A stretch of 64,000 nt of DNA from the NCBI GenBank assembly GCA_030704615.1, contig CM060734.1, forward strand, positions 6,262,001 through 6,326,000. The letters are read 5' to 3'. The notes under the pieces were generated by a model. That model ran no database searches and was not told the DNA's origin. It saw nothing but the letters and a program-made list of their open reading frames with translations. This stretch comes from Takakia lepidozioides (Eukaryota > Plantae > Bryophyta). The translations under genes and the position numbers were made by a program. Numbering within the stretch: position 1 is the first letter of the stretch; every line of letters begins with the position of its first letter. Positions 6,570 through 35,750 of the stretch are shown piece after piece.

Positions 6570-9500
6570 GCTTGGTTTGCGGTCAATACTATGGTACGCC
6601 CATCCTTTTCGGATAGTAGAATTGTACTGCTGCCAGTACCCTCAGAATCTGGCCACAGAAAGGTCCGACATATGTCTTGCCTACAGTAACCTGTTTTGCT
6701 CGAACTAAGATATTCTATATCGTTCACTTGTTTCCACGTGCATGTATTTTTGTATGTTGGAGGGTTCATGTTTTTCTGCTTTCCGAAAACTTGCTTTCCT
6801 CATTCGACCTCCGACAAGGAAATGCGGCGCCGCATTTCCAAGTATCGTCGTAGGTACTGGTAGAGGCGGCCTTTGCCAACACCAAACCGCTCCGAAATTT
6901 CGCACGTGCCAACCCTAATGCGGCACCTATTTCCCAGTTCATTTGCAAACCTTTTCCCGCGAATACCCGAAGAAGACAGAATTGTGAAGTACTGCAGACT
7001 CTATTGGTGCAGACTCCATTGGTTCAATCGCGGCAAAAGGGTCAGCTTCATTCTAATGTTAAGGCATGTAAAACCGTGAGATACTCTATACAGGCCAGTA
7101 TGCGACGTCCTTTTGCAGTGGTTACTGGATTTCCCGTTGCACGGTCACTTATTTCCATGAGCGGATCTAAAAAACCATGAGCGGACTTGTTACTGACGAC
7201 ATATCTTCGCCGCATTACATGATCTGGAACGTCCAAAACGGCAAGGTCAAATAAAAATCTATTATTTACTACTTGTTTAATCTGCCGCATTTCCAAATTT
7301 GAGGAGTCCGCTCATGAAATCCGCGTATCTTAGACTTCGGCTCACCGCTCATGTGGCTCATGGCTCATGGCTCATGGTTTCTGCTCATGAAATAGTAAAC
7401 CTGGTCTTAAACTATCAAGTTTTAAAAGAACCAGCCAGATCCATGGAGGGAGGGAGAGAGGGGAGAGAGAGGAACACAACCATCCCTGGTATGGCAGCTC
7501 TTATGGAGTGAGTTGGTATCAGCTCACCACCGTAAGGAGTGCATACCAGACCTCACATAAATGACCTCCCTCTTCTTTGAAATAAACATGCCTACAATCT
7601 CAACTCTCCAAGGTCAAAAAACAAAACAAGCCGTGACAAGCAAAGGTACATCAACATTACATCATAATGTAGAGTTTTACCTTTTAGCTACACATTCAAC
7701 CAAACCTTAGTGTCTACCTAGCCCATGTTTTTGGGTACCACATGTGTACAAAACCAATGGGGGCAGGTTTAGGTAATGAATTTTCTGCCATTGGCATGTC
7801 CCACGTTGGCAAGTTGTGACAAACGAAGGTACATCAACACATGTACATCAAAATGTAGAGTTTTACCTTTTAGTTTGTATATAAGCTCTGGTGACCGGAA
7901 GAAGCCAGTGAAAGAACCCTCAATTCCCAAGGTCATAAGTAACAATCGGGAAGAATCTTATATCAAACTTTTAGTGTTTACCACCCTTGTTTTGGGTAAA
8001 ACATGTGTACAAAACCAAAGGGGGGCGTATTGGGACTTAGGTAATGAAGTCTGGCAGGGGTTTTACCACCTGGTATTCAGACAAAACATCTACCAACAGC
8101 ATATCAGAATTGGGTATTTCTTATGGTGCCTATAAAGAGCAAAGCCATAACCAGGAGAAACGATTTGAGCCAAAGAAATGGAACTCATTCTTATCATAAG
8201 GTATCTAAATCTGACATAAGGCATCGGCTACAAGGGACCGCAAACAAGAGTAATGTGCATTGACCGGATCACGTATAAGGTGTACACGTCTACTACAGCA
8301 AGCTGTCTTACCAAGGCCTAGCTCAAAATTTCAGCATTCAGAAGCCCTATAGATGTTCTGTGCTTATCTCAGGTACCTTCAAGGATGCCTTGCTCTCCAT
8401 GCCCAATTAGCCAACATATTTTTGCTGGAGAAGATCTTACCTTATGAACGACTTGCTTGCTCCACACCATGGTCATGCGGGAGAGGAGGCTGATATCTCA
8501 TGGTTTGCCTTCCCATTGCCTTGGGTCCATCACTTCAATCAAGAACATATTTGATAACCTTTGTCATGCTCAGACCAAGGTGTTAGTAAATCAAACATAA
8601 AAACTGAAAAAGAAGGAGAGATGGTTGATAATGTGTACAAGAACCACCAAGTACACTGGTCTAAATCAGAGAGGGAGATACTTATGTCTTGTCGAGAATG
8701 GACAAAGACCTGACAAGGTCACTGTAAAATTAACGACAAATCAGCCTCACAACAAGGCATTGTCAACCATTCTTCATTCACAAGTCAGCTTTATGACAAA
8801 TCCCAGACTTCAAAGTCAATGAAGTCTCTGGGTGGGGGGGTGGGAAAAATTAGAGACTCAATTACCACTGTTCATAGCAGGAAACCATCGTTCAACATGC
8901 TAAAAAGTGCCATTCATGACATGCCATGTCATTCAGTCTCTATTTTTTGGTCAGCTTACATACCAAGGCATAACCACATCCACATCAGTTTGGCATGGTA
9001 TCGAGTGTCCTAAAGTAACCAGCTTCTAAAAGAGGCTAAGTTTCCAATGCTTGTACATTCAAGAACACTGTCTGGTCATGAAAACAGGTATGCCCTACAT
9101 TGTAGCATGTTACCAGATCTCTTTAATATCATTGCTCCATTGCCATAGGGAACAAGAGATAGTCGCCCTAATGATTGATTGTCCACCATACTAGGTTAAA
9201 CATAGGAGCCATCAAGATCAAAGGAAAGAGGAAGAAAGGATTGTTCTCCCCAAAGATACAGATGGCGTCGCTTCTTCAACTCGATTCCAATCAACTTCAA
9301 GCTTTAAAATCCATGTTAAGTGAGGACCCTCACCTGGTCCCATCACATGCAATCAGAAACAGTTAAGTTAGAGACGATGTGGAACCCCGGGTGAATCGCA
9401 GGTCTCACGCTTGTTATCGTTGTACAACATGCAATACAAAGCAGGGGCAGAAAGGAAACAGAGCATATGCAAGCCAATACCTCGATGGCTTGTGGAAGAG

Positions 9501-12500
9501 AGGCCTGCGCCATAGCTCTCAAGACCAGCAAACAAGAATGCACAACAAAATGTACAAAGCATGCACAAAGAAAGTGAATCGCCCAAACTTAAAGAGTTGA
9601 GACACTTCCCTGAGGCCTTAAGATCGCCGCTTGTATCTTAATGATCAATGAAGGTCGCAGCAAGCAACCACAACGCAGGTAGATCGCCCGCCAAGCATTA
9701 GAGACAACCGCCACAGGGAAATTGCAGGTACTGCCGCCATTGCGCAGCCCAAGAGGGGAAGAAGGTACTGAATCTTGCCAGAACACCTAAATGCCTTAAT
9801 GGCGCAGCTCCATGGCATTCAAGGGCGCCTGAATCGAGCTCCATGCGCCCCCCGCCGCCATCTCTCAGCTCCAGCCATCCCTTAAGCACGATCGTCGTGG
9901 AGAGGGTTAGGGCAGGGAAGAGATGAAGCGCGATTTCCCGCGATTTCATCCATTCGGGATGAAATCCATCACACGGGATGAACTCTACCGCGCAGGATGA
10001 AATCTATCGTGATTTCATCCGCGTTGGATGAAATTGTCTCTCGATTTTTTCATCTGTGTCATCCTCTGAGGATGACATCCATTTATGGATGAAAAAAATT
10101 AAAGAATAGGATGGCTCCATTACGATCCCGACCTTATACCAAAAATCCGGGTAATATAAATAACCGAAATTAACCAAATTCCAAGAAGGTTAATTAGGGT
10201 TAGGTAACGTACCACTGGTCTTAAACTATCAAGTTTTAAAAGAACCAGCCAGATCCATGGAGGGAGGGAGAGAGAGGGAGAGAGAGGGAACCCACCAACC
10301 TGCCCTGGTATGGCAGCTCCTTATGGAGTGAGTGTGGTATGCACTCACCCGTAAGGGAGTGCATACCAGACCCCATCACATAAATGACCTCCCTCTTCTT
10401 TGTAGCTTTTACTTCTGGTTACAAAGGAACCATAGAAATAAACATGCCTACAATCTCAACTCTCCAAGGTCAAAAAACAAAACAAGCCGTGACAAGCAAA
10501 GGTACATCAACACTTACATCATAATGTAGAGTTTACCTTTTAGCTACACATAAGCTCTGGTAATGGAAAGACGAGGCCAATGAAGGGACCTTAAACTCCG
10601 AAATTCATGAAGCAACAAACAGGAAAGAAACTCTTATCAACCCTTTAGTGTCTACCTAGCCCATGTTTTTGGGTACCACATGTGTACAAAACCAATGGGG
10701 GCAGGTTTAGGTAATGAATTTTCTGCCATTGGCATGTCCCACGTTGGCAAGTTGTGACAAACGAAGGTACATCAACACATGTACATCAAAATGTAGAGTT
10801 TTACCTTTTAGTTTGTATATAAGCTCTGGTGACCGGAAGAAGAGGCCAGTGAAAGAACCCTCAATTCCCAAGGTCATAAAGTAACAATCGGGAAAGAATC
10901 TTATATCAAACTTTTAGTGTTTACCCACCCCTTGTTTTGGGTAAAACATGTGTACAAACCAAAGGGGGGCAGGTATTGGGACTTAGGTAATGAAGTCTGG
11001 CAGGGGTTTACCACCTGGTATTCAGACAAAACATCTACCAACAGCATATCAGAATTGGGTATTTCTTATGGTGCCTATAAAGAGCAAAGCCATAACCAGG
11101 AGAAACGATTTGAGCCAAAGAAATGGAACTCATTCTTATCATAAGGTATCTAAATCTGACATAAGGCATCGGCTACAAGGGACCGGCAAACAAGAGTAAT
11201 GTGCATTGACCGGATCACGTATAAGGTGTACACGTCTACTCCAGCAAGCTGTCTTACCAAGGCCTAGCTCAAAATTTCAGCATTCAGAAGCCCTATAGAT
11301 GTTCTGTGCTTATCTCAGGTACCTTCAAGGATGCCTTGCTCTCCATGCCCAATTAGCCAACATATTTTTGCTGGAGAAGATCTTACCTTATGAACGACTT
11401 GCTTGCTCCACACCATGGTCATGGCGGGAGAGGAGGCTGATATCTCATGGCTTTGGCCTTCCCATTGCCTTGGGTCCATCACTTCAATCAAGAACATATT
11501 TGATAACCTTTTGTCATGCTCAGACCAAGGTGTTAGTAAATCAAACATAAAACTGAAAACAGAAGGGAGATTGGTTGATAATGTGTACAAGAACCACCAA
11601 GTACACTGGTCTAAATCAGAGAGGGAAGATACTTATGTCTTGTCGAGACATGGACAAAGACCTGACAAGGTCACTGTAAAATTAACGACAAATCAGCCTC
11701 ACAACAAGGCATTGTCAACCATTCTTCATTCACAAGTCAGCTTTATGACAAATCCCAGACTTCAAAGTCAATGAAGTCTCTGGGTGGGGGGGTGGGAAAA
11801 ATTAGAGACTCAATTACCACTGTTCATAGCAGGAAACCATCGTTCAACATGCTAAAAAGTGCCATTCATGACATGCCATGTCATTCAGTCTCTATTTTTT
11901 GGTCAGCTTACATACCAAGGCATAACCACATCCACATCAGTTTGGCATGGTATCGAGTGTCCTAAAGTAACCAGCTTCTAAAAGAGGCTAAGTTTCCAAT
12001 GCTTGTACATTCAAGAACACTGTCTGGTCATGAAAACAGGTATGCCCTACATTGTAGCATGTTACCAGATCTCTTTAATATCATTGCTCCATTGCCATAG
12101 GGAACAAGAGATAGTCGCCCTAATGATTGATTGTCCACCATACTAGGTTAAACATAGGAGCCATCAAGATCAAAGGAAAGAGGAAGAAAGGATTGTTCTC
12201 CCCCAAAGATACAGATGGCGTCGCTTCTTCAACTCGATTCCAATCAACTTCAAGCTTTAAAATCCATGTTAAGTGAGGACCCTCACCTGGTCCCATCACA
12301 TGCAATCAGAAACAGTTAAGTTAGAGACGATGTGGAACCCCGGGTGAATCGCAGGTCTCACGCTTGTTATCGTTGTACAACATGCAATACAAAGCAGGGG
12401 CAGAAAGGAAACAGAGCATATGCAAGCCAATACCTCGATGGCTTGTGGAAGAGAGGCCTGCGCCATAGCTCTCAAGACCAGCAAACAAGAATGCACAACA

Positions 12501-13288
12501 AAATGTACAAAGCATGCACAAAGAAAGTGAATCGCCCAAACTTAAAGAGTTGAGACACTTCCCTGAGGCCTTAAGATCGCCGCTTGTATCTTAATGATCA
12601 ATGAAGGTCGCAGCAAGCAACCACAACGCAGGTAGATCGCCCGCCAAGCATTAGAGACAACCGCCACAGGGAAATTGCAGGTACTGCCGCCATTGCGCAG
12701 CCCAAGAGGGGAAGAAGGTACTGAATCTTGCCAGAACACCTAAATGCCTTAATGGCGCAGCTCCATGGCATTCAAGGGCGCCTGAATCGAGCTCCATGCG
12801 CCCCCCGCCGCCATCTCTCAGCTCCAGCCATCCCTTAAGCACGATCGTCGTGGAGAGGGTTAGGGCAGGGAAGAGATGAAGCGCGATTTCCCGCGATTTC
12901 ATCCATTCGGGATGAAATCCATCACACGGGATGAACTCTACCGCGCAGGATGAAATCTATCGTGATTTCATCCGCGTTGGATGAAATTGTCTCTCGATTT
13001 TTCATCTGTGTCATCCTCTGAGGATGACATCCATTTATGGATGAAAAAAATTAAAGAATAGGATGGCTCCATTACGATCCCGACCTTATACCAAAAATCC
13101 GGGTAATATAAATAACCGAAATTAACCAAATTCCAAGAAGGTTAATTAGGGGTTAGGTAACGTACCACTGGTCTTAAACTATCAAGTTTTAAAAGAACCA
13201 GCCAGATCCATGGAGGGAGGGAGAGAGAGGGAGAGAGAGGGAACCCACCAACCTGCCCCTGGTATGGCAGCTCCTTATGGAGTGAGTG

Positions 13289-13323
13289 TGGTATGCACTC
13301 ACCCCGTAAGGGAGTGCATACCA
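13289..13323. other. Conserved stem-loop in the tandem unit (TGGTATGCACTC/GAGTGCATACCA)
   Basis: 12-bp perfect stem with inner CC-GTAA-GG. Present in family-1 units and, inverted, in family 2 (37377-37411, ~52802-52836). Confidence 0.8.
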
Positions 13324-13443
13324 GACCCCATCACATAAATGACCTCCCTCTTCTTTGTAGCTTTTACTTCTGGTTACAAAGGAACCATAGAAATAAACAT
13401 GCCTACAATCTCAACTCTCCAAGGTCAAAAAACAAAACAAGCC

Positions 13444-13950
13444 GTGACAAGCAAAGGTACATCAACACTTACATCATAATGTAGAGTTTTACCTTTTAGC
13501 TACACATAAGCTCTGGTAATGGAAAGACGAGGCCAATGAAGGGACCTTAAACTCCGAAATTCATGAAGCAACAAACAGGAAAGAAACTCTTATCAACCCT
13601 TTAGTGTCTACCTAGCCCATGTTTTTGGGTACCACATGTGTACAAAACCAATGGGGGCAGGTTTAGGTAATGAATTTTCTGCCATTGGCATGTCCCACGT
13701 TGGCAAGTTGTGACAAACGAAGGTACATCAACACATGTACATCAAAATGTAGAGTTTTACCTTTTAGTTTGTATATAAGCTCTGGTGACCGGAAGAAGAG
13801 GCCAGTGAAAGAACCCTCAATTCCCAAGGTCATAAAGTAACAATCGGGAAAGAATCTTATATCAAACTTTTAGTGTTTACCCACCCCTTGTTTTGGGTAA
13901 AACATGTGTACAAAACCAAAGGGGGGCAGGTATTGGGACTTAGGTAATGA
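13444..13950. repeat. Diverged ~265-bp internal direct duplication within each family-1 unit (unit 3 shown)
   Basis: GTGACAA..AAGGTACATCAACAC..GTAGAGTTTTACCTTTTAG..ACATGTGTACAAAACCAA..TTAGGTAATGAA occurs twice, starting ~13444 and ~13710. Confidence 0.85.
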
Positions 13951-16900
13951 AGTCTGGCAGGGGTTTACCACCTGGTATTCAGACAAAACATCTACCAACA
14001 GCATATCAGAATTGGGTATTTCTTATGGTGCCTATAAAGAGCAAAGCCATAACCAGGAGAAACGATTTGAGCCAAAGAAATGGAACTCATTCTTATCATA
14101 AGGTATCTAAATCTGACATAAGGCATCGGCTACAAGGGACCGGCAAACAAGAGTAATGTGCATTGACCGGATCACGTATAAGGTGTACACGTCTACTCCA
14201 GCAAGCTGTCTTACCAAGGCCTAGCTCAAAATTTCAGCATTCAGAAGCCCTATAGATGTTCTGTGCTTATCTCAGGTACCTTCAAGGATGCCTTGCTCTC
14301 CATGCCCAATTAGCCAACATATTTTTGCTGGAGAAGATCTTACCTTATGAACGACTTGCTTGCTCCACACCATGGTCATGGCGGGAGAGGAGGCTGATAT
14401 CTCATGGCTTTGGCCTTCCCATTGCCTTGGGTCCATCACTTCAATCAGGAACATATTTGATAACCTTTTGTCATGCTCAGACCAAGGTGTTAGTAAATCA
14501 AACATAAAACTGAAAACAGAAGGGAGATTGGTTGATAATGTGTACAAGAACCACCAAGTACACTGGTCTAAATCAGAGAGGGAAGATACTTATGTCTTGT
14601 CGAGACATGGACAAAGACCTGACAAGGTCACTGTAAAATTAACGACAAATCAGCCTCACAACAAGGCATTGTCAACCATTCTTCATTCACAAGTCAGCTT
14701 TATGACAAATCCCAGACTTCAAAGTCAATGAAGTCTCTGGGTGGGGGGGGTGGGAAAAATTAGAGACTCAATTACCACTGTTCATAGCAGGAAACCATCG
14801 TTCAACATGCTAAAAAGTGCCATTCATGACATGCCATGTCATTCAGTCTCTATTTTTTGGTCAGCTTACATACCAAGGCATAACCACATCCACATCAGTT
14901 TGGCATGGTATCGAGTGTCCTAAAGTAACCAGCTTCTAAAAGAGGCTAAGTTTCCAATGCTTGTACATTCAAGAACACTGTCTGGTCATGAAAACAGGTA
15001 TGCCCTACATTGTAGCATGTTACCAGATCTCTTTAATATCATTGCTCCATTGCCATAGGGAACAAGAGATAGTCGCCCTAATGATTGATTGTCCACCATA
15101 CTAGGTTAAACATAGGAGCCATCAAGATCAAAGGAAAGAGGAAGAAAGGATTGTTCTCCCCCAAAGATACAGATGGCGTCGCTTCTTCAACTCGATTCCA
15201 ATCAACTTCAAGCTTTAAAATCCATGTTAAGTGAGGACCCTCACCTGGTCCCATCACATGCAATCAGAAACAGTTAAGTTAGAGACGATGTGGAACCCCG
15301 GGTGAATCGCAGGTCTCACGCTTGTTATCGTTGTACAACATGCAATACAAAGCAGGGGCAGAAAGGAAACAGAGCATATGCAAGCCAATACCTCGATGGC
15401 TTGTGGAAGAGAGGCCTGCGCCATAGCTCTCAAGACCAGCAAACAAGAATGCACAACAAAATGTACAAAGCATGCACAAAGAAAGTGAATCGCCCAAACT
15501 TAAAGAGTTGAGACACTTCCCTGAGGCCTTAAGATCGCCGCTTGTATCTTAATGATCAATGAAGGTCGCAGCAAGCAACCACAACGCAGGTAGATCGCCC
15601 GCCAAGCATTAGAGACAACCGCCACAGGGAAATTGCAGGTACTGCCGCCATTGCGCAGCCCAAGAGGGGAAGAAGGTACTGAATCTTGCCAGAACACCTA
15701 AATGCCTTAATGGCGCAGCTCCATGGCATTCAAGGGCGCCTGAATCGAGCTCCATGCGCCCCCCGCCGCCATCTCTCAGCTCCAGCCATCCCTTAAGCAC
15801 GATCGTCGTGGAGAGGGTTAGGGCAGGGAAGAGATGAAGCGCGATTTCCCGCGATTTCATCCATTCGGGATGAAATCCATCACACGGGATGAACTCTACC
15901 GCGCAGGATGAAATCTATCGTGATTTCATCCGCGTTGGATGAAATTGTCTCTCGATTTTTCATCTGTGTCATCCTCTGAGGATGACATCCATTTATGGAT
16001 GAAAAAAATTAAAGAATAGGATGGCTCCATTACGATCCCGACCTTATACCAAAAATCCGGGTAATATAAATAACCGAAATTAACCAAATTCCAAGAAGGT
16101 TAATTAGGGGTTAGGTAACGTACCACTGGTCTTAAACTATCAAGTTTTAAAAGAACCAGCCAGATCCATGGAGGGAGGGAGAGAGAGGGAGAGAGAGGGA
16201 ACCCACCAACCTGCCCCTGGTATGGCAGCTCCTTATGGAGTGAGTGTGGTATGCACTCACCCCGTAAGGGAGTGCATACCAGACCCCATCACATAAATGA
16301 CCTCCCTCTTCTTTGTAGCTTTTACTTCTGGTTACAAAGGAACCATAGAAATAAACATGCCTACAATCTCAACTCTCCAAGGTCAAAAAACAAAACAAGC
16401 CGTGACAAGCAAAGGTACATCAACACTTACATCATAATGTAGAGTTTTACCTTTTAGCTACACATAAGCTCTGGTAATGGAAAGACGAGGCCAATGAAGG
16501 GACCTTAAACTCCGAAATTCATGAAGCAACAAACAGGAAAGAAACTCTTATCAACCCTTTAGTGTCTACCTAGCCCATGTTTTTGGGTACCACATGTGTA
16601 CAAAACCAATGGGGGCAGGTTTAGGTAATGAATTTTCTGCCATTGGCATGTCCCACGTTGGCAAGTTGTGACAAACGAAGGTACATCAACACATGTACAT
16701 CAAAATGTAGAGTTTTACCTTTTAGTTTGTATATAAGCTCTGGTGACCGGAAGAAGAGGCCAGTGAAAGAACCCTCAATTCCCAAGGTCATAAAGTAACA
16801 ATCGGGAAAGAATCTTATATCAAACTTTTAGTGTTTACCCACCCCTTGTTTTGGGTAAAACATGTGTACAAAACCAAAGGGGGGCAGGTATTGGGACTTA

Positions 16901-19087
16901 GGTAATGAAGTCTGGCAGGGGTTTACCACCTGGTATTCAGACAAAACATCTACCAACAGCATATCAGAATTGGGTATTTCTTATGGTGCCTATAAAGAGC
17001 AAAGCCATAACCAGGAGAAACGATTTGAGCCAAAGAAATGGAACTCATTCTTATCATAAGGTATCTAAATCTGACATAAGGCATCGGCTACAAGGGACCG
17101 GCAAACAAGAGTAATGTGCATTGACCGGATCACGTATAAGGTGTACACGTCTACTCCAGCAAGCTGTCTTACCAAGGCCTAGCTCAAAATTTCAGCATTC
17201 AGAAGCCCTATAGATGTTCTGTGCTTATCTCAGGTACCTTCAAGGATGCCTTGCTCTCCATGCCCAATTAGCCAACATATTTTTGCTGGAGAAGATCTTA
17301 CCTTATGAACGACTTGCTTGCTCCACACCATGGTCATGGCGGGAGAGGAGGCTGATATCTCATGGCTTTGGCCTTCCCATTGCCTTGGGTCCATCACTTC
17401 AATCAAGAACATATTTGATAACCTTTTGTCATGCTCAGACCAAGGTGTTAGTAAATCAAACATAAAACTGAAAACAGAAGGGAGATTGGTTGATAATGTG
17501 TACAAGAACCACCAAGTACACTGGTCTAAATCAGAGAGGGAAGATACTTATGTCTTGTCGAGACATGGACAAAGACCTGACAAGGTCACTGTAAAATTAA
17601 CGACAAATCAGCCTCACAACAAGGCATTGTCAACCATTCTTCATTCACAAGTCAGCTTTATGACAAATCCCAGACTTCAAAGTCAATGAAGTCTCTGGGT
17701 GGGGGGGGTGGGAAAAATTAGAGACTCAATTACCACTGTTCATAGCAGGAAACCATCGTTCAACATGCTAAAAAGTGCCATTCATGACATGCCATGTCAT
17801 TCAGTCTCTATTTTTTGGTCAGCTTACATACCAAGGCATAACCACATCCACATCAGTTTGGCATGGTATCGAGTGTCCTAAAGTAACCAGCTTCTAAAAG
17901 AGGCTAAGTTTCCAATGCTTGTACATTCAAGAACACTGTCTGGTCATGAAAACAGGTATGCCCTACATTGTAGCATGTTACCAGATCTCTTTAATATCAT
18001 TGCTCCATTGCCATAGGGAACAAGAGATAGTCGCCCTAATGATTGATTGTCCACCATACTAGGTTAAACATAGGAGCCATCAAGATCAAAGGAAAGAGGA
18101 AGAAAGGATTGTTCTCCCCCAAAGATACAGATGGCGTCGCTTCTTCAACTCGATTCCAATCAACTTCAAGCTTTAAAATCCATGTTAAGTGAGGACCCTC
18201 ACCTGGTCCCATCACATGCAATCAGAAACAGTTAAGTTAGAGACGATGTGGAACCCCGGGTGAATCGCAGGTCTCACGCTTGTTATCGTTGTACAACATG
18301 CAATACAAAGCAGGGGCAGAAAGGAAACAGAGCATATGCAAGCCAATACCTCGATGGCTTGTGGAAGAGAGGCCTGCGCCATAGCTCTCAAGACCAGCAA
18401 ACAAGAATGCACAACAAAATGTACAAAGCATGCACAAAGAAAGTGAATCGCCCAAACTTAAAGAGTTGAGACACTTCCCTGAGGCCTTAAGATCGCCGCT
18501 TGTATCTTAATGATCAATGAAGGTCGCACCAAGCAACCACAACGCAGGTAGATCGCCCGCCAAGCATTAGAGACAACCGCCACAGGGAAATTGCAGGTAC
18601 TGCCGCCATTGCGCAGCCCAAGAGGGGAAGAAGGTACTGAATCTTGCCAGAACACCTAAATGCCTTAATGGCGCAGCTCCATGGCATTCAAGGGCGCCTG
18701 AATCGAGCTCCATGCGCCCCCCGCCGCCATCTCTCAGCTCCAGCCATCCCTTAAGCACGATCGTCGTGGAGAGGGTTAGGGAAGGGAAGAGATGAAGCGC
18801 GATTTCCCGCGATTTCATCCATTCGGGATGAAATCCATCACACGGGATGAACTCTACCGCGCAGGATGAAATCTATCGTGATTTCATCCGCGTTGGATGA
18901 AATTGTCTCTCGATTTTTCATCTGTGTCATCCTCTGAGGATGACATCCATTTATGGATGAAAAAAAATTAAAGAATAGGATGGCTCCATTAGGATCCCGA
19001 CCTTATACCAAAAATCCGGGTAATATAAATAACCGAAATTAACCAAATTCCAAGAAGGTTAATTAGGGGTTAGGTAACGTACCACTG

Positions 19088-19096
19088 GTCTTAAAC
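19088..19096 (+). repeat. Left 9-bp target-site duplication GTCTTAAAC of MULE copy 2
   Basis: Identical 9-mer at 33549-33557; uninterrupted units carry one copy. A 9-bp TSD is typical of Mutator. Confidence 0.95.
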
Positions 19097-22900: not shown

Positions 22901-23555
22901 CGGGAGGCAGAAAAGTTACCTTTCTGACTGGGAATTTGGCATAGTCGAGAGCAGCCAGCTCGGAGCGAGAACCATCGAGGTGATGTTGTCGTAGGAGCTG
23001 CACAATGGACCGGGTTGGAGTTATGCTCGAGGGCACATGCGTAGCACCTACAGAGACGTCCATGCCGGATTTGAACGACCGTGTGGAGGACATGGGTACC
23101 TCAATGCAATCATCTTCCTCGTCGGAAATGTCGAATACGTCCACACGAGAAGCTATGGAGGGTCTTGACGGTCCAGGTCGGGAATGATTATCGTTGCATA
23201 CCTCTCTGTTGGCAGTGGCCGCCTCTCGGTTTCCGGACTCCTTTGTGGATGGTGTGGGCAGCGACTGATTCGGAAAGGGAATGGGCATTCCCACAGCTCG
23301 GTACAGGATGGTGTCTGACGGGGGAACGTGCCATTCGATTCCGCAACCTCCGTCGTTACCTAGCACGACAATGGTCTCGTCAACCTGTCCAGGAACATCC
23401 TTCCTTTCTTCTTCCAAATAAACTGTGCCCGGTTTGAGCTTGAATTTGGAACAAAGGTAAGTTTCAGTCACTCTGCAAAGTCCTCCCTCGTTTGGGATCC
23501 AGGCTCTCCCAAGTTGCGGAGGACAGCAAACTATAGCGTAGGAATTCGGAGCCAT
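19948..23555 (-). CDS. MULE-type DDE transposase with C-terminal SWIM zinc finger; join(23555..21462, 21378..19948)
   Basis: ORFs 21276-23771 and 19948-21369 join in frame through an 83-nt GT-AG intron (QYMRE|ERCLDSD). Motifs VMFD, FMADNAQA, CGFH, TNMAES, and SWIM CNCTDF-x-CKH. Start codon (MAPNSY) inferred. Confidence 0.88.
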
Positions 23556-23979
23556 CGAACACCGCACGGAGTTGGCAAGTGCGAGGTTCAGTATAGCGAC
23601 AGACCAAGGCTCACAGGCACCATCTAAGTGGATCTGCGGAGTCCATCGACGATTGGAAGTCGCACATTGAAGTGGAAAGTATTGTTTCAAGCTACATGCA
23701 TGAAGGTGGGAGGTTTGATTCCATAGCCAGTGAGTAGGACAATGATGGCCGATTCGGCGACGAAATAACATCTCCTGACAGTTTCTCCTGAGGGTGGATC
23801 CAGCAGTATTCTCGGTGCAGACAGGAACGTTCGCACTGACAAGTGCCAGGACTGCTGGTTAAAACGGTCAGACAACCAAGTTGTGCTCATCAAGACTGGC
23901 CGCAATTGTGTTGTTTCGGAACAATGCAACCCATTGAGGTTCCAGATTTCCCGTCACGAGTGATTCTGTCGATTGCTGG

Positions 23980-25580
23980 TGGACGGAAATACGGCGCCGC
24001 ATTTCCGTATTGCATCTTGGTCATGCAACAGAGCGACGGAAATGCGGCACCGAGTTTCCGTCCGGGGGAAACCTTTATACTCTCCAGAACGGAAATGCGG
24101 TAACGCATTTCCATCCAGCAAGCACGGTATGTGAAGGTGGAACGGAAATGCGGTACCGCATTTCCGTTCTGATTGAGATTTATGAACAACGGGAACAGAA
24201 ATGCGGCACCGCATTTCCGTCCGAGTCGCACTTTTCGACATTCCAGAACGGGAATGCGGCGCCGCATTTCCATTTTGTATCTGATGCATGGAGCTGAGGG
24301 ATAGAAATGCTGCAGCACATTTCCGTCATTCAACAAGCACGGTATGTGAAGGTGGAACGGAAATGCGGTACCGCATTTCCGTTCTGATTGAGAATTATGA
24401 ACAACGGGAACAGAAATGCGGCACCGCATTTCCGTCAAAGTCGCACTTTTCGACATTCCATAAAGGAAATGCGGCGCCGCATTTCCATTTTGTATCTGAT
24501 GCCTGGAGCCGAGTAAGATTCCGACAGCTTCATACAGCGCAATTCCGACCGGTTGAGACATTCACACTATCCAGAACGGAAATGCGGCACCGCATTTCCG
24601 TTCTGACTGAAAATCGTGAACTATCTGAACTGAAATGCGGCACCGTATTTCCATCCGAGTCGCACCTACCATCATTCCAGAACGGAAATGCGGCACCGCA
24701 TTTCCGTTCTGACTGAAAATCGTGAACCATCGGAACTGAAATGCGGCAGCGCATTTCCATCCGAGTCGCACCTCCCAACATTCCAGAACGGAATGTATTA
24801 GATTTAAAAGGGAAATGCGGCACCGCATTTCCGTTCTGATGAAATATCCTGAAACATCGGAATTGAAATGCGGTACCGCATTTCCGTCGGAGTCCCACCA
24901 TCCGACATTCCAAAACGGAAATGCGGCACCGCATTTCCGTTTTGTATGTGAGGCATGGAGCTGTGGAACGAAAATGCGGGAAGGCATTTCCGCCAGCGTC
25001 AGACGTTAATACTCTACAGAACGGAAATGCGGTACCGCATTTCCATTCTGACTGAAAATCGTGCGCAACGGGTACAGAAATGCGGCACCGCATTTCCGTT
25101 CGAGTCGCACCTTCCGACATTCTCGAACGGAAATGCGGCGCCGCATTTCCGTTTTGTATATTCGGCCTGGAGCTGTGCTACGGAAATGTGTTGCCGCATT
25201 TCCATCCATGTGAGACCTTCAACCTTTCCAGACCGGAAATGCGACACCGCATTTCTGTCCAGGTGAGACCTCTATACTTTCCCGAACGGAAATGTGGCAC
25301 GGCATTTCCATTCATCAACTAACGTATGTGAAGTGGGAACGGAAATGCGGCGCCGCATTTCCCTTCTGAATCTCATACATGGAGCTGTGGGACGGAAATG
25401 CGGCACCGTATTTCCGTTCAACAACTAAGGTATGTGAAGGTGGAACGGAAATGCGGTGCCGCATTTTCTTCCAACAAGTACGGATGTGTAGCTTCGTGAT
25501 GGTACTTAACGGAAATGCGGCGCCGCATTCGCATTCTCGCTCCAACTCATCAGACGCTGGGACGGAAATGCCTTGAAATG
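23980..25580. repeat. Array of ~29 palindromes (core GGAAATGCGG-NN-CCGCATTTCC), 53-bp period
   Basis: Cores start at 24091, 24144, 24197, 24250, 24303, 24359, 24412, 24465 etc. Best units are the perfect 28-bp palindrome AACGGAAATGCGGTACCGCATTTCCGTT. Confidence 0.95.
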
Positions 25581-25967
25581 TGAACACGTGGAGCAACGGA
25601 ATTGCTGCACATGTCGGCACTCTATCTGACTGAAGGGGCATGAGGCGGCGCGGCCTGACCGTTGGATAATGATGTTTGATTTTCGGACGGCGGGCGTACC
25701 CTCAACGATTCGAATTTCGTAATGACGCAAACTCCACGAGGAGACACTTTCGTCCAACCTTTCGAACCCAAGTGGTGCATCACCGCCGTTTCATCTACTT
25801 TTGTCGTGTCTCCTCAGTCACCCCTCTCGCGCCCTTTCCATCTGCACTCTTTGCCCCTTTTCCCTCTCTCTGTTCTTCTTATGCTCGAACCTGAGAGGGG
25901 GGGAGTTCGTGCACCAGACAGGAGACCTCGTCGCAAGCTCCGGAAATTATACTTCGGACGTAGGCCA

Positions 25968-28900
25968 ATGCCGAAGGGGAGGAAGCAGATGCGTCTACAG
26001 GAGGAGATTGCCATCTCCGAGCAGCAGGCCACTCAGGCAACCCAGCCACCAGTGAGAGCTCCATGCGATCGGGCTGCGCGCAGCTGATCGAGCACCGAAC
26101 CCCCCATTTTGCTTCTGTAATTCTTAGACTGAATGCTAGGAGACTTGAATGCAGAACATGTTTGCATGCCTAACAGGAAAGGTGGACGTGCTGGAGGGAT
26201 CGCAGGAATCCGAAGAGCCGCAGGAAGAGTCCGAGGAGCTAGCTGCAGCACGTACACCCACCCGATCCCCGAGCGCGGGTACTCCTGCCGGGCCTAGCCC
26301 TCTGCGATTCAAAGACGCGTCTTCGAAGGGCAAGTTCAAAGTCTCAGAGATCGACTCGCGTTCTTCGATCATGGAGAATCGCCAGCAGGGGTCGGGCCCT
26401 TCTCCAGCAAAGTCGAAGAAGAAGCAGCCCGTCCCTCTACTGGCTTCTGAACCGGCTCAGGCCGATTCACCCCCCCCAACGCGAATGAAGCAGCAGGGTA
26501 GAAGACAGATTCTATTGCAGCAGACACCTTCACCTGCAAGGATGAGGAAGCAGAAGGCAATCAGGGCGACGGCCGAACAATCTCCCGCAAAACCGCTTCC
26601 ACGAGCTGAAGCTCAGTTCCTGGAGGATTTCCCGCCTGCAGATGTTGGGGCCGACTCTGCTGCAGCGAAGGCAATGGGATCGACCGTTGATCTCGATTTG
26701 GTACCGGAGGAGGGTGCTGCCGCTGAACGTTCGCAGGCAGACCTCACCACCGATGAGCTAGCAGGCCCGGAGGAGGCCTCTGCAGTGGCAGAATTGCCCG
26801 CACACAGGCCCCAGAGTGCAGCTCCAGTTGAGGATGCTCCACCTGCTCAGCCACTACCGGCACCTACAGACATGTCTCCGGAGGATTTCAAAAGTGCAGC
26901 GGATAAAATGTTGGAGGAGACACACAGTAGCATTGGCAGAGTTCTGGGCAGCAGGGTATTCCAGCGGACTCTTCGAATCCCACTCTGTCGCATGGTCTCC
27001 CTTCCCATCGTCAGGCAGGCCCTTCCCGGAGATGTGGATAAGCTCAAGTTCGCATTTCGAGAAGGGTACCGTCTGGGATCGGCAGCGTTTTACGTTTCCA
27101 TAGAGAATGAGGACGGCGAAACCCGTGGACCCACTGCCGATGAATTGTCAACGTGGGATACCCACTGGCACACTCGCAACCACGAATTCGAGGCGACGCT
27201 GAAGGGTGATCCCGACTTCGGCCATATGTCGGGAAAAATGTTCTTTGTGTGGGACGGGAATCACCGACTTCTCGCCTGGTGGGAGTACATCAAGCAGAAC
27301 CATGCCAAGCACATTGGCTGGCATTACATGGTGGAGTGTGTCATCCTCAAGGTGAAGGCGGCAGACTCCTCCCTCCTCAAGAATGCCATGGCGGACCTCA
27401 ACTCGTAAGATACTCATACCCTCCCTAGCACATTCGAAATGCGGTGCCGCATTTCGGTTTCCATTCTGGTTTGATTCCGTGCTTCCGTGTACTGAACTGG
27501 AGAGTGTGCCTTGCAGGGTCACTGAGAATGCGTACGTGCATACCCACATGGCACATATGCTGTACAGGGTGAGGAAAACTGGTCTTACTGATCCGCAGAT
27601 GTTTGCGGAAATGCTGGAGCCGGAGCTCATTCAGAAAGCCGTTGCAAAAACAGACCGGACATGGTATCGTCTCACTATGGATGGAATGGTGGAGGTGATA
27701 TACGAAGTAAGTCGTGCTCCAATTTCCCTCTGCTCATCCTTCCCCAATTTCCAGTAATGTTTCCACATGAATCGAATGTAACGCTTCTGCATGTTTTTGT
27801 TGGCAGTCAAACATCAAGCTGGATTTGGCCCATGCCAAACGCTTCTTCATGGAAAGTGAGGGGCAGGTCAAAACGTTGCAGTCATTGACTGAGCACTTGA
27901 AGGAAGCCGGTGTCAAGTCCAGAACCAAATACAAGTCAAAGCTTGTGAAGCTGGTGGCAATTGCAGATCCGGCACTTGGAAAGGACTTCATCCCCGAGAT
28001 TGCAAAACACTATTCTCGGGCCATGCAGCCGACCATGCAATTGGAGAAACTGCATCACCTCTCAACGGCATGTGTGGAGGCGAAAGAGAAGGTGAGGTTT
28101 CAATGCACTGAATTTCCTTCCTAGCAATAGCCACTCTCTTCCAGCCACTGACATTGGATCGGAAATGGCAGACACGGTGGCTGTCGATCTGGAATGCATC
28201 CGAGAGCATAAGGACAATGTGGTCTTTTCCACTGGAAGTTTCCGACCCTGCAGTGGATGTGTGGCTCAACCGTATGACTTGGTGGTTCCAGGTAATTCAA
28301 GGTACTTCCCCAGATTTGCTTTTCTGACATGAATTCCCTGAACTGCTACGTGACAATGCATTTGGGAATGGCAGGTAATGTCGAATGCAAAGGAGCAAGT
28401 CGTAATGCACACAAATTCGTTCGGCTTGTACGTCAAATGGGATGGAACACAGACATTGGAAGACTACGTGACACGTTTCAGATGTGCGTACAAGGACAAC
28501 CTTTTCGCCAGAGAGCTACAGACAGCAAGAAGGAGCGTGGAGTTTACACATCAGGAGGGAGCGGGGAAAGCTGCAATGCGAATTGTTTACAGGTGAAGCA
28601 CAGCTGCCCTTGTATGCGAAGCCTGGTTACGAGGTTTGTCTCGGAAATGCGGCACCGCATTCGCATTTTATGTTTTCGGTGGCACTCTGCCAGTAGGTTG
28701 GTCTCAAGTTTTGCTCACGCATGCTGACTGCCTTGCAGTGCCTTGCAGGTATATGAAATACGTGCTCCTTCAGACAGGGGCCCTGGCTCAAGAGCCCCCG
28801 TTCTTCATGGCTTGGACCGTGGCGGGCCCAAGCTGTGTCTACACACCCGAGATGCAGAAACAATGGCATCCCGCGCATCTCGTTGGATGCCCGTGGTACC

Positions 28901-31102
28901 TGGACATGTCTGGCGGTATTGTTGACGAGTCTGAGAAAGATCTGCACGCCTTGGCAGAAGAGAAGAGAAAGGAAAGACGTGTCCCTGCTGGGCCAAAGTC
29001 GGCAAAGGAATCTGCTGCTCTGGAAGAATCCAGAAAGGCAGCTGAGATGGCACAAAAGACGGTGGATGCAGCTGTGCAGGCCCAACAGAAGGGGTCGAAG
29101 AAGAGGACTCGCCAGCAAGGAGCAGCTGTTGTGACACCCGCCAAAACGAAGAAGCAGAAACAGCCTGTTCAGGAAGAGGGTGAGGAAGAGGACTCCGATG
29201 GAGACTTTGCAACCAGCCCACCCCCCCAAACGCAGGCTGCCTCCCCTGTGCCCACCGTTGTCACGAGAGGCACGAGAACTGGCTCGGCAAAGAAGGCACT
29301 CTTCAACCCCCCAGGGGGGCACCCTTTCGAGCCGGTGGAAATGAAGAGGCCGAAAGTGGCTCCCGAAACTGTAGTCCAGTGTGTAAATGAGAGTTTCTTG
29401 GCGGCTTTGGATGGACGGGCAGCCAAGTTGGCATACATGAAGACCATGGAGGGTCTGAAGGGCAGAGCACTGAAGAAGGCGACTGCCGAAGAGCCTTCCG
29501 ACACCCCAGGATTTCAGAATATGGTCTCGTTCTTTGAGAGGGTGTGTGCAGACAAGGATTGTAGGAGGGGCGGAAATGCCACCGAGTGGTCTTGCGATAT
29601 GATCATCTTGGATATTCCGGACGGAGAGCCTGTGGAAGGACTGCAAGCTTTGCCATCTTGGAACAGGTACTCGGAGGACTTTTGGAAGAAAGGATTCGGG
29701 CTTGCCCGCATGGTGTTGGACGACAGAGGCTGTGTGGTTGTCCTGGCGAGCAGAGGAAAAAACACTCAGACAGGAATTGCGAAGTGGACCCGCAAGAGCG
29801 CCGTCCCGATTCTGAAAAAGAAGTGGACGTGCATCAACACACTGGGCCTTCGGTCGGAAGGGAAGAAGGTGATTACGACACTGGCACTCGTCCATTCATT
29901 TGCTTGGGTGCTTTCAAATGCGGTGCCGCATTCGGTTTCTAATCGTTTTCCCCCTGTGTATGCAGACGAAGCAGTTCGATGCATACTGCTTTGTGAAGGA
30001 AAACTCCACCTTTGCTTTCCGGAAGGAGGGAGGAAAGGTTGACCCGAACTGCGACCCACTCGATTACGACGTTCTGTTCAACAACGTTCCCAAGGAACTT
30101 CTCCCTCATAGCCTCACTTCAACGGAACCCCTGCGGTACTCACGGACTCGGAGCCCTGCCTTCATTCAGACAATTATGGAGACATGCACAGACGTGGAGG
30201 GCACAGTGCTGGACCTCATCTGTGGGACAGGTATGCAGAATCTTGATCTCTGCTGTTCTGCAAATTCTCGTTAGGATGTAGTTCGCAACATCTGAAGCGC
30301 CATGTGGTAATGTGTGGATGGCATTGTAACAGGTGCCTCAATGTGGGCTGGGCGGTTTTCCGACCGGCACCTCTTTGCCTACGAGGAGGATTCATCCGTG
30401 TGGGGATCCCATCTGGAGGGGCTGCAACGGAATGTGAAGGCTCCCGACAGAGCGGAAGTCTCCTCGGATTCGTCGGAGTCCGAGGAAGACACAGTGGACA
30501 TTGATGCAGAGGAGAACCCGGAATACGAGTGAGTGCAAACATTGTAAGTTTGCAAAGCCTTCTGGGTCATTTATGTCAAAGGAATTTCCCGACTGTGGTT
30601 CTCATTAGTCTCGTTGATGATTGTCATGTGCAGGATTGCAGGGTCCGGGTCGAAACATGTAGGGCCTACACTTCCTGCCAGGAAGAATGTCCCGTTCTTT
30701 GCGAGGGCCGACTTCATGACGAGCCCGGTGAGGGACTACTCCCTTCCTAGTTATGCAGCTAAACTCGCAAATACAGCGATTAGAAGAAGTGAGAATCCCA
30801 GTAAAGTAGAGCAGATTTTGGAGAGGGCTAGGGAGGACAGAAGGATAAGGAAAGAGTTGGCAGCAGCTCAGACAGGTAGACGGGTACGAAAGTACATATG
30901 TGATTCAGCGGATGAGAGCGACGCAGACAGGGAGGAAGACGACCCAACGGAGGTGAGATGGACAGTTCCGCAAGGGGAAGATGGGATTTTCGAAAGCCTG
31001 GCCAACGAGCAGTCCGCTGGAGATGAGAGAGGCACTGAGGGGGTGGAGGAGGAGCAGGACAGTCTAGAACAGGATGAGGATTCCGATGATTTTCAAGATT
31101 AA
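25968..31102 (+). CDS. Multi-exon transposon accessory protein: ParB/Srx-like domain plus beta-class amino(N6A/N4C)-DNA-methyltransferase-like domain, acidic tail
   Basis: GT-AG exons ~26177-27404, 27517-27706, 27807-28091, (unresolved 28.1-28.6 kb), 28749-29868, 29966-30230, 30333-30528, 30634-31102. FFVWDGNHRLLAW at ~27241-27279; DMIILDIPDG at ~29596-29625; spliced TVLDLICGT|GASMWAGRFSDRHLFAYEED. First exon uncertain. Confidence 0.72.
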
Positions 31103-31289
31103 TAGAATTTTAATGAAGTCTCTGTAAATGTAAATTCTCTTCCAGAGTATATAAAGAAAATTCTGCCCGACATTCGTGACCCCTCTCCAGTGTGCATTCC
31201 AGCCACACAATCGCCCAAACCAGGACGCTCCCAAAATCAGAAATGGGTCAGGGCATTTCCAAAATTTTGGCAACTCTAAGAACCTCTTT

Positions 31290-32010
31290 TGGAAATGCGG
31301 CACCGCATTTCCAAAACAGGGGAGGGACTAATTTTTCCATTTCAATGTTGGCATAGTAAAAAGTAATCTTAATTGGGAATGCGGTGCCGCATTTCCAAAA
31401 TTTCCTTTGTCCACACGCCAGTTTTGGCCTCTCCCGCTCATTGCATGGATGCCACCACGCTTACAGAGGTCGAACAAGGAGGTCGAACAAGGAGGCCGAC
31501 ATGGCGGGATTGGAAATGCGGTGCCGCATTTCCATATTGGGGATGGTGGTTGTTCGAACTGCAGACCCATCAGCAAAAACTGGCACCGCATTCCATTGTA
31601 AAAAAAAAGTCGATGACGGACATGGAAATGCGGCGCCGCATTTCCAGAACGGACATCGCAATTTGTCAATTTGCAGACCCTCTCTCGGAAATGCGGTAAC
31701 GCATTCCATCGCGCTGGTCGGAAATAGGTGCACTTTTCGAAGTGTTGGACGGAAATGCGGCACCGCATTCCCTTGTCCAAAAAGAAGTTTCCATTGCCAA
31801 GCTGGAAATGCGTCGCCGCATTTGCATGCCAACCTCGTTTTCTGATCAATTTATAGACCCGTGTTGGTATTTCGTGTACCTGGACGGAAATGATGCACCG
31901 CATTTTCTTGTCCCACATGGAAATGCGGTGCCGAATTTCGATGTCCGACATGGAAATGCGGTGCCGCATTTCGATGTCCGACATGGAAATGCTGTGCCGC
32001 ATTTCAATGT
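31290..32010. repeat. Second cluster of the same palindrome (irregular, ending in 33-bp tandem units)
   Basis: GGAAATGCGG..CCGCATTTC at ~31291, 31376, 31512, 31624, 31687, 31751, 31804, 31919, 31952, 31985. Confidence 0.9.
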
Positions 32011-33548
32011 CCGACATGGCGTTACTCTGGTATATTCTTGACACATGACTCACATACCGGTTACTCTGCTTTATTCAACCAGACAGACAAATTGTAGAAA
32101 TGAGACATCAAATTGTAAACAGTGGGCCAAATCCGAGAGTTATTCAACACAATGAAACACAGTCATACAGAAGTGAGGTACATTCCAGGGCACAGTCACT
32201 GCCAGGTGGGCCGATAGCCACTGGACACGACGAAGTCCATCCCCTCTTCGATGTAAATGCGGCGCCGAATTTCCATCCGGGGGATGGACTTCGGTGGCAG
32301 ATCTCAAACTATAACTTGTTGATGAGAAAGATGTATGGGTTCATCCACCGCTGGCGTGATGAACACGTTCCACCTCCGTCGGTGGGTACGTGTGACCCAG
32401 ATGCTCCATTTTGGAGGCCGGACTGCTCTTCCGCTTCGTATCTTTTCCAAAATCTAAGGGCTTCGTAGCTGTCCGCAAGGTCATCGGCATCCAAGTCGTC
32501 CTCAGGTCCTCCTTTGCAAGGATGCCGTGCTTCCGGAACCGGGACGACTGCCCCTTTGGAGGCGGCATCGATTATGCATGGTTCGGCCACATCGGGAGAC
32601 ATTGTTATCTGTACAACAGATTACACAGAGAGGTACTGGTTCGATTGTGGAACATTGGTGGCTTTGAGTATATCGTAGGCCCTACGCCTTCGAGCGGGGT
32701 GACGATCTTGGTTTGAGGAGTCCGGGGCTCCTGCGCATCCTCGATTCCTCGATGCCGATTTTCCCAGCTATACGGTCACCCATGCAGAAGAAGGCGCACT
32801 GCTATGCTGTTGCGGTGGGGAACTGGTCTGCCACTGGACGTGGGTGGACTCCATCGGAGAGACCTATTCTCCTCGAGGATGCGCCGCCTTTCTCCTTGTA
32901 TTGGGAACATTCGCATTGGTGTGGACGACGAAAAGTGAAGATTTCCATATTCGATGGTGGTATGATTGAAGGGCAGGACATTGTGGTGCATCACTAGGGC
33001 GGTACAAACGGCTGGCATCGACTTTACATGGAGGAGCCCCAGGACTCATGAGCTGAGTTCTGAGAGCAGTCGAAGTCCCATTGACACGTGACTTGTATTC
33101 AGTAGGCACAGGGCTCAAGATTTGAGGGCACAATCAGCACAGTAGACGTGCTTCAAATGCAATTCATGTGGATCAGGTAAACCTCCTTGTGCCCTCTTTT
33201 TATTCTATTCTGTGTCCATTGTTCCGAGAATGCGACATGTATTTCGTTTGGGATTGGGAGTGTGGGTGAATTTTGCAAATGGCTGGTAGGCTGAAACGGG
33301 CCCCCATTGTACAGAGCAGTACCACCCTACCTTTCGCGAACATTGCCTTTCAATTATAATTCTAAATACATTGCCGAACCTCCTTCATCGGAGGTCCTTC
33401 TCCCCCTATGACCGTGGCACCCTAACCCTATTCCCGCGGACACTCATTTCCGGAAAATAGTGCTGCTCATGTTTTTTTTCCACACTTAACACGACTCTGC
33501 TCATGGCTCATTCCGCTCATGGCCATGGCTTCATGAAATAGCACCCCC

Positions 33549-35750
33549 GTCTTAAACTATCAAGTTTTAAAGAACCAAGCCAGATCCATGGAGGGAGGGA
33601 GAGAGAGTGAGAGAGAGGGACCCACCCAACCTGCCCCTGGTATGGCATCTCCTTATGAGTGAGTGTGGTATGCCTCATCACCCGCGTAAGGGAGTGCATA
33701 CCAGACCCCATCACATAAATGACCTCCCTCTTCTTTGTAGCTTTTACTTCTGGTACAAAGGAACCATAGAAATAAACATGCCTACATCTCAACTCTCCAA
33801 GGTCAAAAAACAAAACAAGCCGTGACAAGCAAAGGTACATCAACACTTACACATCTAATGTAGAGTTTTACCTTTTAGCTACACATAGGCTCTGGTAATG
33901 GAAAGACGAGGCCAAGAAGGGACCTTAAACTTCCGAATTCATGAAGCAACAAACAGAAAGAAACTCTTATCACCCCTTTAGTGTCTACCTAGCCCATGTT
34001 TTTGGTACCACATGTGTACAAAACCAATGGGGGCATGTTTAGGTAATGAATTTTCTGCCATTGGCATGTCCCAACGTTGGCAAGTTGTGACAAACGAAGG
34101 TCATCAACACATTACATCAAAATGTAGAGTTTTACCTTTTAGTTTGTATATAAGCTCTGGTGACCGGAAGAAGAGGCCAGTGAAGAACCCTCAATTCCAA
34201 GGTCATAAAGTAACAATCGGGAAAGAATCTATATCAACTTTTAGTGTTTACCTCACCCCTTGTTTTGGGTAAAACATGTGTACAAAACAAAAGGGGGCAG
34301 GTATTGGGACTTAGGTAATGAAGTCTGGCAGGGTTTACACCTGGTATTCAGACAAAACATCTACCCCAGCATATCAGAATTGGGTATTTCTTATGGTGCC
34401 TATAAGAGCAAAGCCATACCCAGGGAGAAACGATTTGAGCCAAAGAAATGGAACTCATTCTTATCATAAGGTATCTAAATCTGACATAAGGCATCGGCTA
34501 CAAGGGACCGGCAAACAAAGAGTAATGTGCATTGACCGATCCGTATAAGGTGTACACGTCTACTCCAGCAAGCTGTCTTACCAAGGCCTAGCTCAAAATT
34601 TCAGCATTCAGAAGCCCTATTGTTGGTATCTCAGGTACTCAAGGATGCCTGCTATCCATGCCCAATTAGCCAACATATTTTTGATGGAGAATACTTACCT
34701 TATGAACGACTTGCTTGCTCCACAACCATGGTCATGGCGGGGAGAGGAGGCTGATATCTCATGGCTTTGCCTCCTTCCCATTGCCTTGGGTCCATCACTG
34801 CAATCAGGACATATTTGATAACCTTTGTCATGCTCAGACCAAGGTGTTAGTAAATCAAACATAAAACTGAAAACAGAAGGGAGATTGGTTGATAATGTGT
34901 ACAAGAACCACCAAGTACACTGGTCTAAATCAGAGAGGAAGATACTTATGTCTTGTCGAGACATGGACAAAGACCTGACAAGGTCACTGTAAAATTAACG
35001 ACAAATCAGCCTCACAACAAGGCATTGTCAACCATTCTTCATTCACAAGTCAGCTTTATGACAAATCCCAGACTTCAAAGTCAATGAAGTCTCTGGGTGG
35101 GGGGGTGGGAAAAATTAGGACTCAATTACCACTGTTCATAGCAGGAAACCATCGTTCAACATGCTAAAAAGTGCCATTCATGACATGCCATGTCATTCAG
35201 TCTCTATTTTTTGGTCAGCTTACATACCAAGGCATAACCACATCCACATCAGTTTGGCATGGTATCGAGTGTCCTAAAGTAACCAGCTTCTAAAAGAGGT
35301 AAGTTTCCAAGCTTGTACATTCAAGAACACTGTCTGGTCATGAAAACAGGTATGCCCTACATTGTAGCATGTTACCAGATCTCTTTAATATCATTGCTCC
35401 ATTGTCACATCAGTATGCCATAGGGAACAAGAGATAGTCGCCCTAATGATTGATTGTCCACCATACTAGGTTAAACATAGGAGCCATCAAGATCAAAGGA
35501 AAGAGGAAGAAAGGATTGTTCTCCCCCAAAGATACAGATGGCGTCGCTTCTTCAACTCGATTCCAATCAACTTCAGCTTTAAAATCCATGTTAAGTGAGG
35601 ACCCTCACCTGGTCCCATCACATGCAATCAGAAAACAGTTGAGTTAGAGACGATGTGGAACCCCAGGTGAATCGCAGGTCTCACGCTTGTTACGTTGTAC
35701 AACATGCAATACAAAGCAGGGGCAGAAAGGAAACAGAGCATATGCAAGCC
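33549..35750. repeat. Right TSD plus continuation of tandem family 1 (partial unit)
   Basis: GTCTTAAAC at 33549-33557, then the unit resumes (TATCAAGTTTTAAA...) and stops at ...TATGCAAGCC 35750. Confidence 0.93.

Follow-up and report, generated by a model that had tools for sequence, protein, structure and literature searches.

A stretch of 64,000 nucleotides of the moss Takakia lepidozioides (assembly GCA_030704615.1, contig CM060734.1, positions 6,262,001 to 6,326,000; hereafter, the window) carries two copies of the same Mutator-like element (MULE), which lie in opposite orientations in a tandem repeat and adjoin the same 9-bp sequence, GTCTTAAAC. The explanation that we favor, with a probability of roughly 0.6, is that the element integrated on two separate occasions, once in each orientation, at the same 9-bp target in two different repeat units. 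The window was mapped by self-comparison and direct reading of the sequence, and for copy 1, the claim of a shared 9 bp is exact to within 1 bp. The features on which the argument relies are the following, with positions counted from the first letter of the window.

1-7403, minus strand: copy 1, the left 7.4 kb of the Mutator-like element, decayed and extending past the window start (reverse-complement match to 19097-26721)
7404-7412, plus strand: presumed target-site copy of copy 1, GTCTTAAAC, directly after the left terminus and followed by tatcaag
7404-19096, plus strand: four non-coding tandem units of ~2,957 bp each (U1, 7404-10217; U2, 10218-13170; U3, 13171-16128; U4, 16129-19096)
10218-10226, plus strand: empty target site between U1 and U2; recurs, likewise empty, at 13171-13179 and 16129-16137
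19088-19096, plus strand: left target-site duplication of copy 2, GTCTTAAAC, followed by the left terminus GAGGTTTACTATTTCATGAGC
19097-33548, plus strand: copy 2, the complete Mutator-like element of 14,452 bp, delimited by terminal reading and the flanking duplication
33549-33557, plus strand: right target-site duplication of copy 2, GTCTTAAAC, with the right terminus before it and tatcaag after it
33549-35750, plus strand: U5, a fifth, older and partial unit (1.9% substitutions and 44-46 insertion or deletion (indel) events relative to U2-U4)

Copy 2 is a clean insertion into one unit junction. Its 9-bp target-site duplication, which falls on the typical value for MULEs (9 bp, in a range of 8-11), is perfect when checked against the three empty sites, and the duplication of GTCTTAAAC at 19088 and 33549 that had been described in a first-pass annotation is thus borne out. 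The uninterrupted unit junction, the 23-mer formed by accactg, GTCTTAAAC, and tatcaag (ACCACTGGTCTTAAACTATCAAG), is observed three times in the window, with zero occurrences expected. GTCTTAAAC itself is present six times (7404, 10218, 13171, 16129, 19088, and 33549), always in the same phase of the ~2,957-bp unit, and its reverse complement is absent from the whole window. Three of these occurrences are the empty sites, two flank copy 2, and the remaining one adjoins the left end of copy 1, which is in reverse.

Copy 1 corresponds to the reverse complement of 19097-26721, which agrees with the earlier description of one element present in both orientations. As that description also stated, the copy ends at 7403 with a left-type terminus and is followed by GTCTTAAAC and tatcaag, that is, by the downstream flank. 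What had been overlooked is the terminal base of the element, which is C in copy 1 and G in copy 2 (CAGGTTTAC versus GAGGTTTAC; on the plus strand, 7403 is G where C would be expected), and therefore this junction can be placed only to within 1 bp. For two random insertions, the chance of sharing a position in a 2,957-bp unit would be ~3e-4 (about 1 in 3,000), which implies a strong local target preference.

Copy 1 is old and decayed, and copy 2 is young. Over 5.5 kb, 65 indel events and a substitution level of 2.3% separate the two, and the divergence is 3.7% in the terminal 850 bp. Over 3.9 kb of coding frames, copy 1 has 43 indels, 42 of them frameshifting and mostly 1-bp deletions; the frames of copy 2 are open. 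This 42:0 split of frameshifts indicates that the copies differ in age because copies of equal age would share such damage. As a control for the skew, a pair of long terminal repeat (LTR)-like repeats in the window, with 2.0% substitutions and 39 indels, shows a split of 26:13 between its members. The sharp difference in decay, together with the opposite orientations at the same 9 bp, argues for separate integrations. Also, the data of four public read runs over 4500-10400 were all short contigs, with three of the runs resembling unitigs of noisy reads. At 17 of the 18 listed positions, the family majority in these data has the base of copy 2 and not that of copy 1, leaving 17 differences private to copy 1. 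Nine of these 17 are C-to-T or G-to-A changes, as expected for the in-place decay of a silenced element.

Regarding the cause of the preference, we infer that the transposase would make 9-bp staggered cuts and would strongly prefer the 9-mer, either for its sequence or for the structure around it. This 9-mer comes close to a palindrome, with three of its four symmetric pairs matching about the central T and a TTAA core, and a symmetric preference for such a target would allow an insertion to be accepted in either orientation. Moreover, the site is repeated in every unit, so that a hotspot in one unit would be a hotspot in all of them. The location of the target in one arm of an imperfect hairpin, already pointed out in the first-pass annotation, is real, the structure being a modest one.

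10215-10248, plus strand: imperfect hairpin whose 5' arm contains the 9-bp target (-7.1 kcal/mol, z score of -4.2 against shuffles)

We reject an origin of the target as a relic Mutator terminus because the head and the tail of the unit align locally with the two termini no better than shuffled sequences do. Likewise, the target does not recur in the related LTR-like repeats: a 150-bp module is common to these and to the unit, and the target site itself is not.

Several points weigh against two integrations at one site. The sample consists of two insertions, and the three empty sites lying between the copies belong to near-identical units that may postdate both. The far end of copy 1 is ~7 kb upstream of the window, and hence its own duplication is not seen. 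Among the contigs listed for 4500-10400, none bridges 7403/7404 and none has a loose end at 7403. The coding substitutions between the copies look neutral (ratio of nonsynonymous to synonymous differences, pN/pS, of 0.68; p of 0.23, not significant) and therefore give no independent proof that the copies descend from separate active lineages. Finally, the terminal base of copy 1 is changed, and the three bases ahead of the 9-mer at its junction, ctg, are identical to the native flank, so that this junction could be a repair joint and not a canonical integration.

Such a joint would mean that only one canonical insertion occurred and that copy 1, originally located upstream, was cut at its end by the transposase and joined, by end-joining or aberrant (alternative) transposition, to an array flank that had been set free at the end of a further element, with loss of the intervening DNA. 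Maize genetics has examples of deletions that begin precisely where a Mutator element ends, the terminal C in place of G and the native ctg are compatible with a microhomology joint, and the far end of copy 1 is out of view. However, this route requires a second, forward-oriented element at the same site beside the U1 head. Since that head is old (7.2% from the U5 head) and copy 2 is young, the partner would have been a separate older insertion, and with it the re-use of the site returns. Moreover, a single change in the end base is expected occasionally at the 3.7% divergence of the terminal 850 bp. We consider a repair joint unlikely. Very improbable, in turn, is a single insertion that was co-amplified with the array by unequal crossing-over, one of the resulting copies being then flipped in place, either through terminal-repeat recombination or through excision followed by back-ligation. 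Tandem units often amplify together with an insertion that they contain, which would place the copies at one phase, and the 2.3% divergence of the copies is near the 1.9% between U5 and U2-U4. Nevertheless, the left-type outermost 8 bases of copy 1 are impossible to obtain from a crossover within the terminal repeats, the 42-to-0 split is incompatible with equal age, and an inversion through a short flanking inverted repeat, as worked out from the sequence, would leave other sequence beside the end. A flip in place is thus largely refuted. Simpler rearrangements were also tried. An inverted segmental duplication, which the first-pass annotation had set aside, predicts that the copy 1 end is followed by the upstream flank in reverse complement, and the sequence found there differs. 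An inversion between the terminal repeats, which it had named as a possible refutation, predicts right-type outermost bases (GGGGGTGC), and the outermost 8 bases of copy 1 are of the left type (AGGTTTAC). An inversion of the block between the copies would imply, reasoning from the sequence, an unnatural ancestor in which copy 2 was bordered by an inverted repeat of the flank. We regard the trivial routes to the shared site as excluded with fair confidence.

It might also be asked whether the copy 1 junction was created by the assembly. The lack of a listed contig across 7403/7404 would suit such an artefact, as would the extension of copy 1 beyond the window start, possibly near a contig end, and the character of the ~2% repeats of this region, which are rich in 1-bp indels and have as many transversions as transitions. 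Against this, mis-joins occur within repeats and not exactly at an element end beside an intact copy of the target. The unit head beside copy 1 is unique, with 4.5% divergence from the other heads and its own deletions; the two arms differ by 2.3% and 65 indels, unlike those of a fold-back read; and errors are not widespread, as copy 2 and U2-U4 are free of them. This makes an artefact decidedly improbable. Pure coincidence, with zero target preference, is barely credible: thousands of windows were surveyed, which would favor finding an odd case, but two insertions at the same base of a 2,957-bp unit have a chance of ~3e-4, and both family members must in addition land in one 15-kb array.

The element that would have integrated twice is assigned to the Mutator superfamily because of its 9-bp duplication together with its transposase motifs, PF10551-type feature matches, and terminal repeats. 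These terminal inverted repeats begin with G(A/G)GG at both ends and have the common core CTATTTCATGA; beyond this core, the termini are 85% alike over ~40 bp, which is short and imperfect for a MULE. Read inward, the right terminus begins with GGGGGTGCTATTTC. The motif CATGAGC forms subterminal clusters of nine copies at 19111-19356, eight at 7156-7389, and three at 33465-33521, with a total of 26 in the window versus 12 expected, and it also follows the common terminal core in termini from moss metagenomes. The clusters are likely candidates for transposase-binding sites.

19951-23858, minus strand: transposase coding region of copy 2, with two open frames, one of 860 codons (21279-23858) and one of 476 (19951-21378)

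Near 21300-21380, the two transposase frames would be connected through a frame change or an intron, and they contain an NMAESVH motif, recognized by eye, and a C-terminal CxC...CxH finger. A Pfam search with nine long open reading frames (ORFs) and stop-to-stop pieces gave no significant match, and PF10551 had no match even at an E value of 10. The SWIM zinc finger PF04434 was matched at an E value of 0.063 and 13.3 bits, below the cut-off of 19.6 bits. In the Atlas feature search, the best matches of the central part of the transposase were PF10551 (MULE) clusters, at 0.94, 0.92, and 0.91. A word search of the protein collection with the 831-residue transposase ORF found a single distant relative (E value of 3e-39), and the same search with a 194-residue ORF beside the left terminus found no relative in that collection.

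A stronger proposal is that the subfamily is a truly sequence-specific transposon, with a transposase that finds the 9-mer or its hairpin in a non-coding repeat, whether dispersed or tandem, and directs insertions there regardless of orientation. We hold this to be possible but rather doubtful. The visible insertions of the subfamily are two, both at the target site. The exact 22-mer of the left terminus has no match in metagenome contigs, and a gapped pattern of the core found nine loci there, which represent three independent, moss-associated termini that are 81-86% alike among themselves. These three termini have three unrelated flanks, which is weak evidence on the subfamily because only the common core motif is shared and one end of each is present. 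Within the contig sequence covered, none of them encodes a detectable relative of the window transposase, and altogether, the terminus patterns in metagenome contigs and the protein word searches reached no other member of the subfamily. Just outside one of the related termini (L004:7168-7441), a fragment resembles the transposase of the element, with 40-46% identity over ~90 amino acids; judged from this similarity, a second Mutator-like copy would adjoin the first at that terminus.

The tandem repeat that hosts both copies has its own history. U2-U4 differ from each other by 0-0.14% and are probably of recent origin. U1 is 1.1% different from them over its whole length, a figure that rises to ~4.5% for the first 330 bp, and its head next to copy 1, which is 7.2% from the U5 head and has its own deletions, is old. 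U5 is interrupted at ~35750 by a 2.95-kb LTR-like repeat. In whole-window scans, neither an Rfam family at gathering score nor a transfer RNA (tRNA) was detected in the unit, and therefore the repeat is not an RNA-gene array; it also has no ORF of more than 123 amino acids. The contigs of the four runs cover the tail-head junction of the unit at an element-like depth, with variants at 10209 and 10216, the summed depth not being equivalent to copy number. At 7850-9620, and in the same part of U2-U5, the summed contig depth of the four runs is 5-40 times that of the rest of the unit or of the Mutator element. Because contig depth varies so widely along the unit, this looks like a mosaic in which part of a repeat family of very high copy number (~7850-9620) is embedded.

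Each unit also contains an internal tandem duplication of 264-269 bp (1.8 copies, ~80% alike; 10489-10974, 13444-13931, 16402-16889, and 33822-34299), which predates the amplification of the unit. The ~150-bp module mentioned above is found in the unit heads at 10258-10405, 13211-13360, 16169-16318, and 33589-33740 and, in the opposite orientation, in two LTR-like repeats at 37341-37488 and about 52760-52900. In it, a GA-rich run precedes an inverted repeat (CCCTGGTATGGCA ... TGCATACCAGACC), and the Mutator target lies ~40 bp outside it. The LTR-like repeats form a pair, 35747-38696 and 51156-54115. In this pair, as in the other pairs of ~2% divergence (copy 1 and copy 2; U5 and U2-U4), transversions equal transitions and there is ~1 indel per 1.5 substitutions, the indels being mostly 1-bp deletions with a mild enrichment in homopolymers. 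Such a spectrum would reflect either an unusual mutation pattern or a signature of assembly errors confined to the older repeats. Also, a G-rich minisatellite occupies 40600-41990 in a retrotransposon-like region; it is built of GGGCTGTGAC-type 10-mers with higher-order periods of 51-111 bp, and it has a GC content of 63% and a strong GC skew.

To our knowledge, very few cut-and-paste transposons select a single complex DNA sequence, and in the Mutator superfamily we know only of descriptions of simple TA-repeat targeting. The contrast drawn in the first-pass annotation between rare targeted transposons and loosely targeting Mutators was incomplete since MULEs that target TA microsatellites and a weak Mu motif were already known (PMC5907723; bioRxiv 10.64898/2026.05.18.725947). 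In maize Mu, the target motif is palindromic, GC-rich, and weak, and insertions gather in regional hotspots at many positions, for example, at 108 different ones in one 500-bp hotspot (bioRxiv 10.64898/2026.05.18.725947). The window element resembles maize Mutator (MuDR/Mu) and other plant MULEs in its 9-bp duplication, terminal inverted repeats, and insertion in either orientation. The DDE transposase of those elements carries a SWIM-type zinc finger, for which the match in the window element is below threshold. Mu has a statistical preference for a palindromic motif and forms hotspots (bioRxiv 10.64898/2026.05.18.725947). On the other hand, the two insertions of the window element share one AT-rich 9-mer, and it is 14.4 kb long with very short, imperfect terminal repeats, unlike Mu. 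TAFTA of maize, MuTAnT of Medicago, and SaTar of guayule and rice are MULEs that target TA microsatellites, and as members of the same superfamily, they demonstrate that MULE transposases can be target-selective (PMC5907723). However, their target is a simple (TA)n and their specificity is documented by hundreds of copies, whereas in the window, two copies share a complex 9-mer in a 2.95-kb unit.

Outside the superfamily, Dada DNA transposons target genes for tRNA and for small nuclear RNA (snRNA) (PMC3706591, PMC8869645). As with the two insertions of the window, theirs occupy a single fixed place in a multicopy sequence; unlike the window element, they belong to a different superfamily and have RNA genes as targets, and the window repeat has none. 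Pokey, of the piggyBac family, inserts into the 28S ribosomal RNA (rRNA) gene in the ribosomal DNA of Daphnia with a TTAA duplication (PMC4912750). It is likewise a cut-and-paste element that reuses one site of a tandem repeat, being present also elsewhere in the genome, but the window element makes a 9-bp duplication in an anonymous non-coding repeat. The kind of target typical of Dada and Pokey, a conserved rRNA, tRNA, or snRNA gene, is not what the window unit offers, and the proposal of the first-pass annotation that the family homes to a multicopy safe-harbour repeat is not supported, the unit having no RNA gene, tRNA, or ORF that would qualify it as a harbour of the Dada or Pokey type. 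A "safe harbour" role of the repeat is conjecture. Among these systems, the element works like a hotspot-seeking MULE.

Finally, if homing fails, the window would be a neat case of a local insertion hotspot multiplied by a tandem array. If homing is true, the element would be the first of the MULEs to target a complex sequence, and it would suggest itself as a candidate for targeted integration. Moreover, if one 9-bp site is reliably chosen, it would show how such DDE transposases read their targets and could provide a tool for site-directed insertion, and it would account for the persistence of a 14-kb element in a compact plant genome whose genes it spares.

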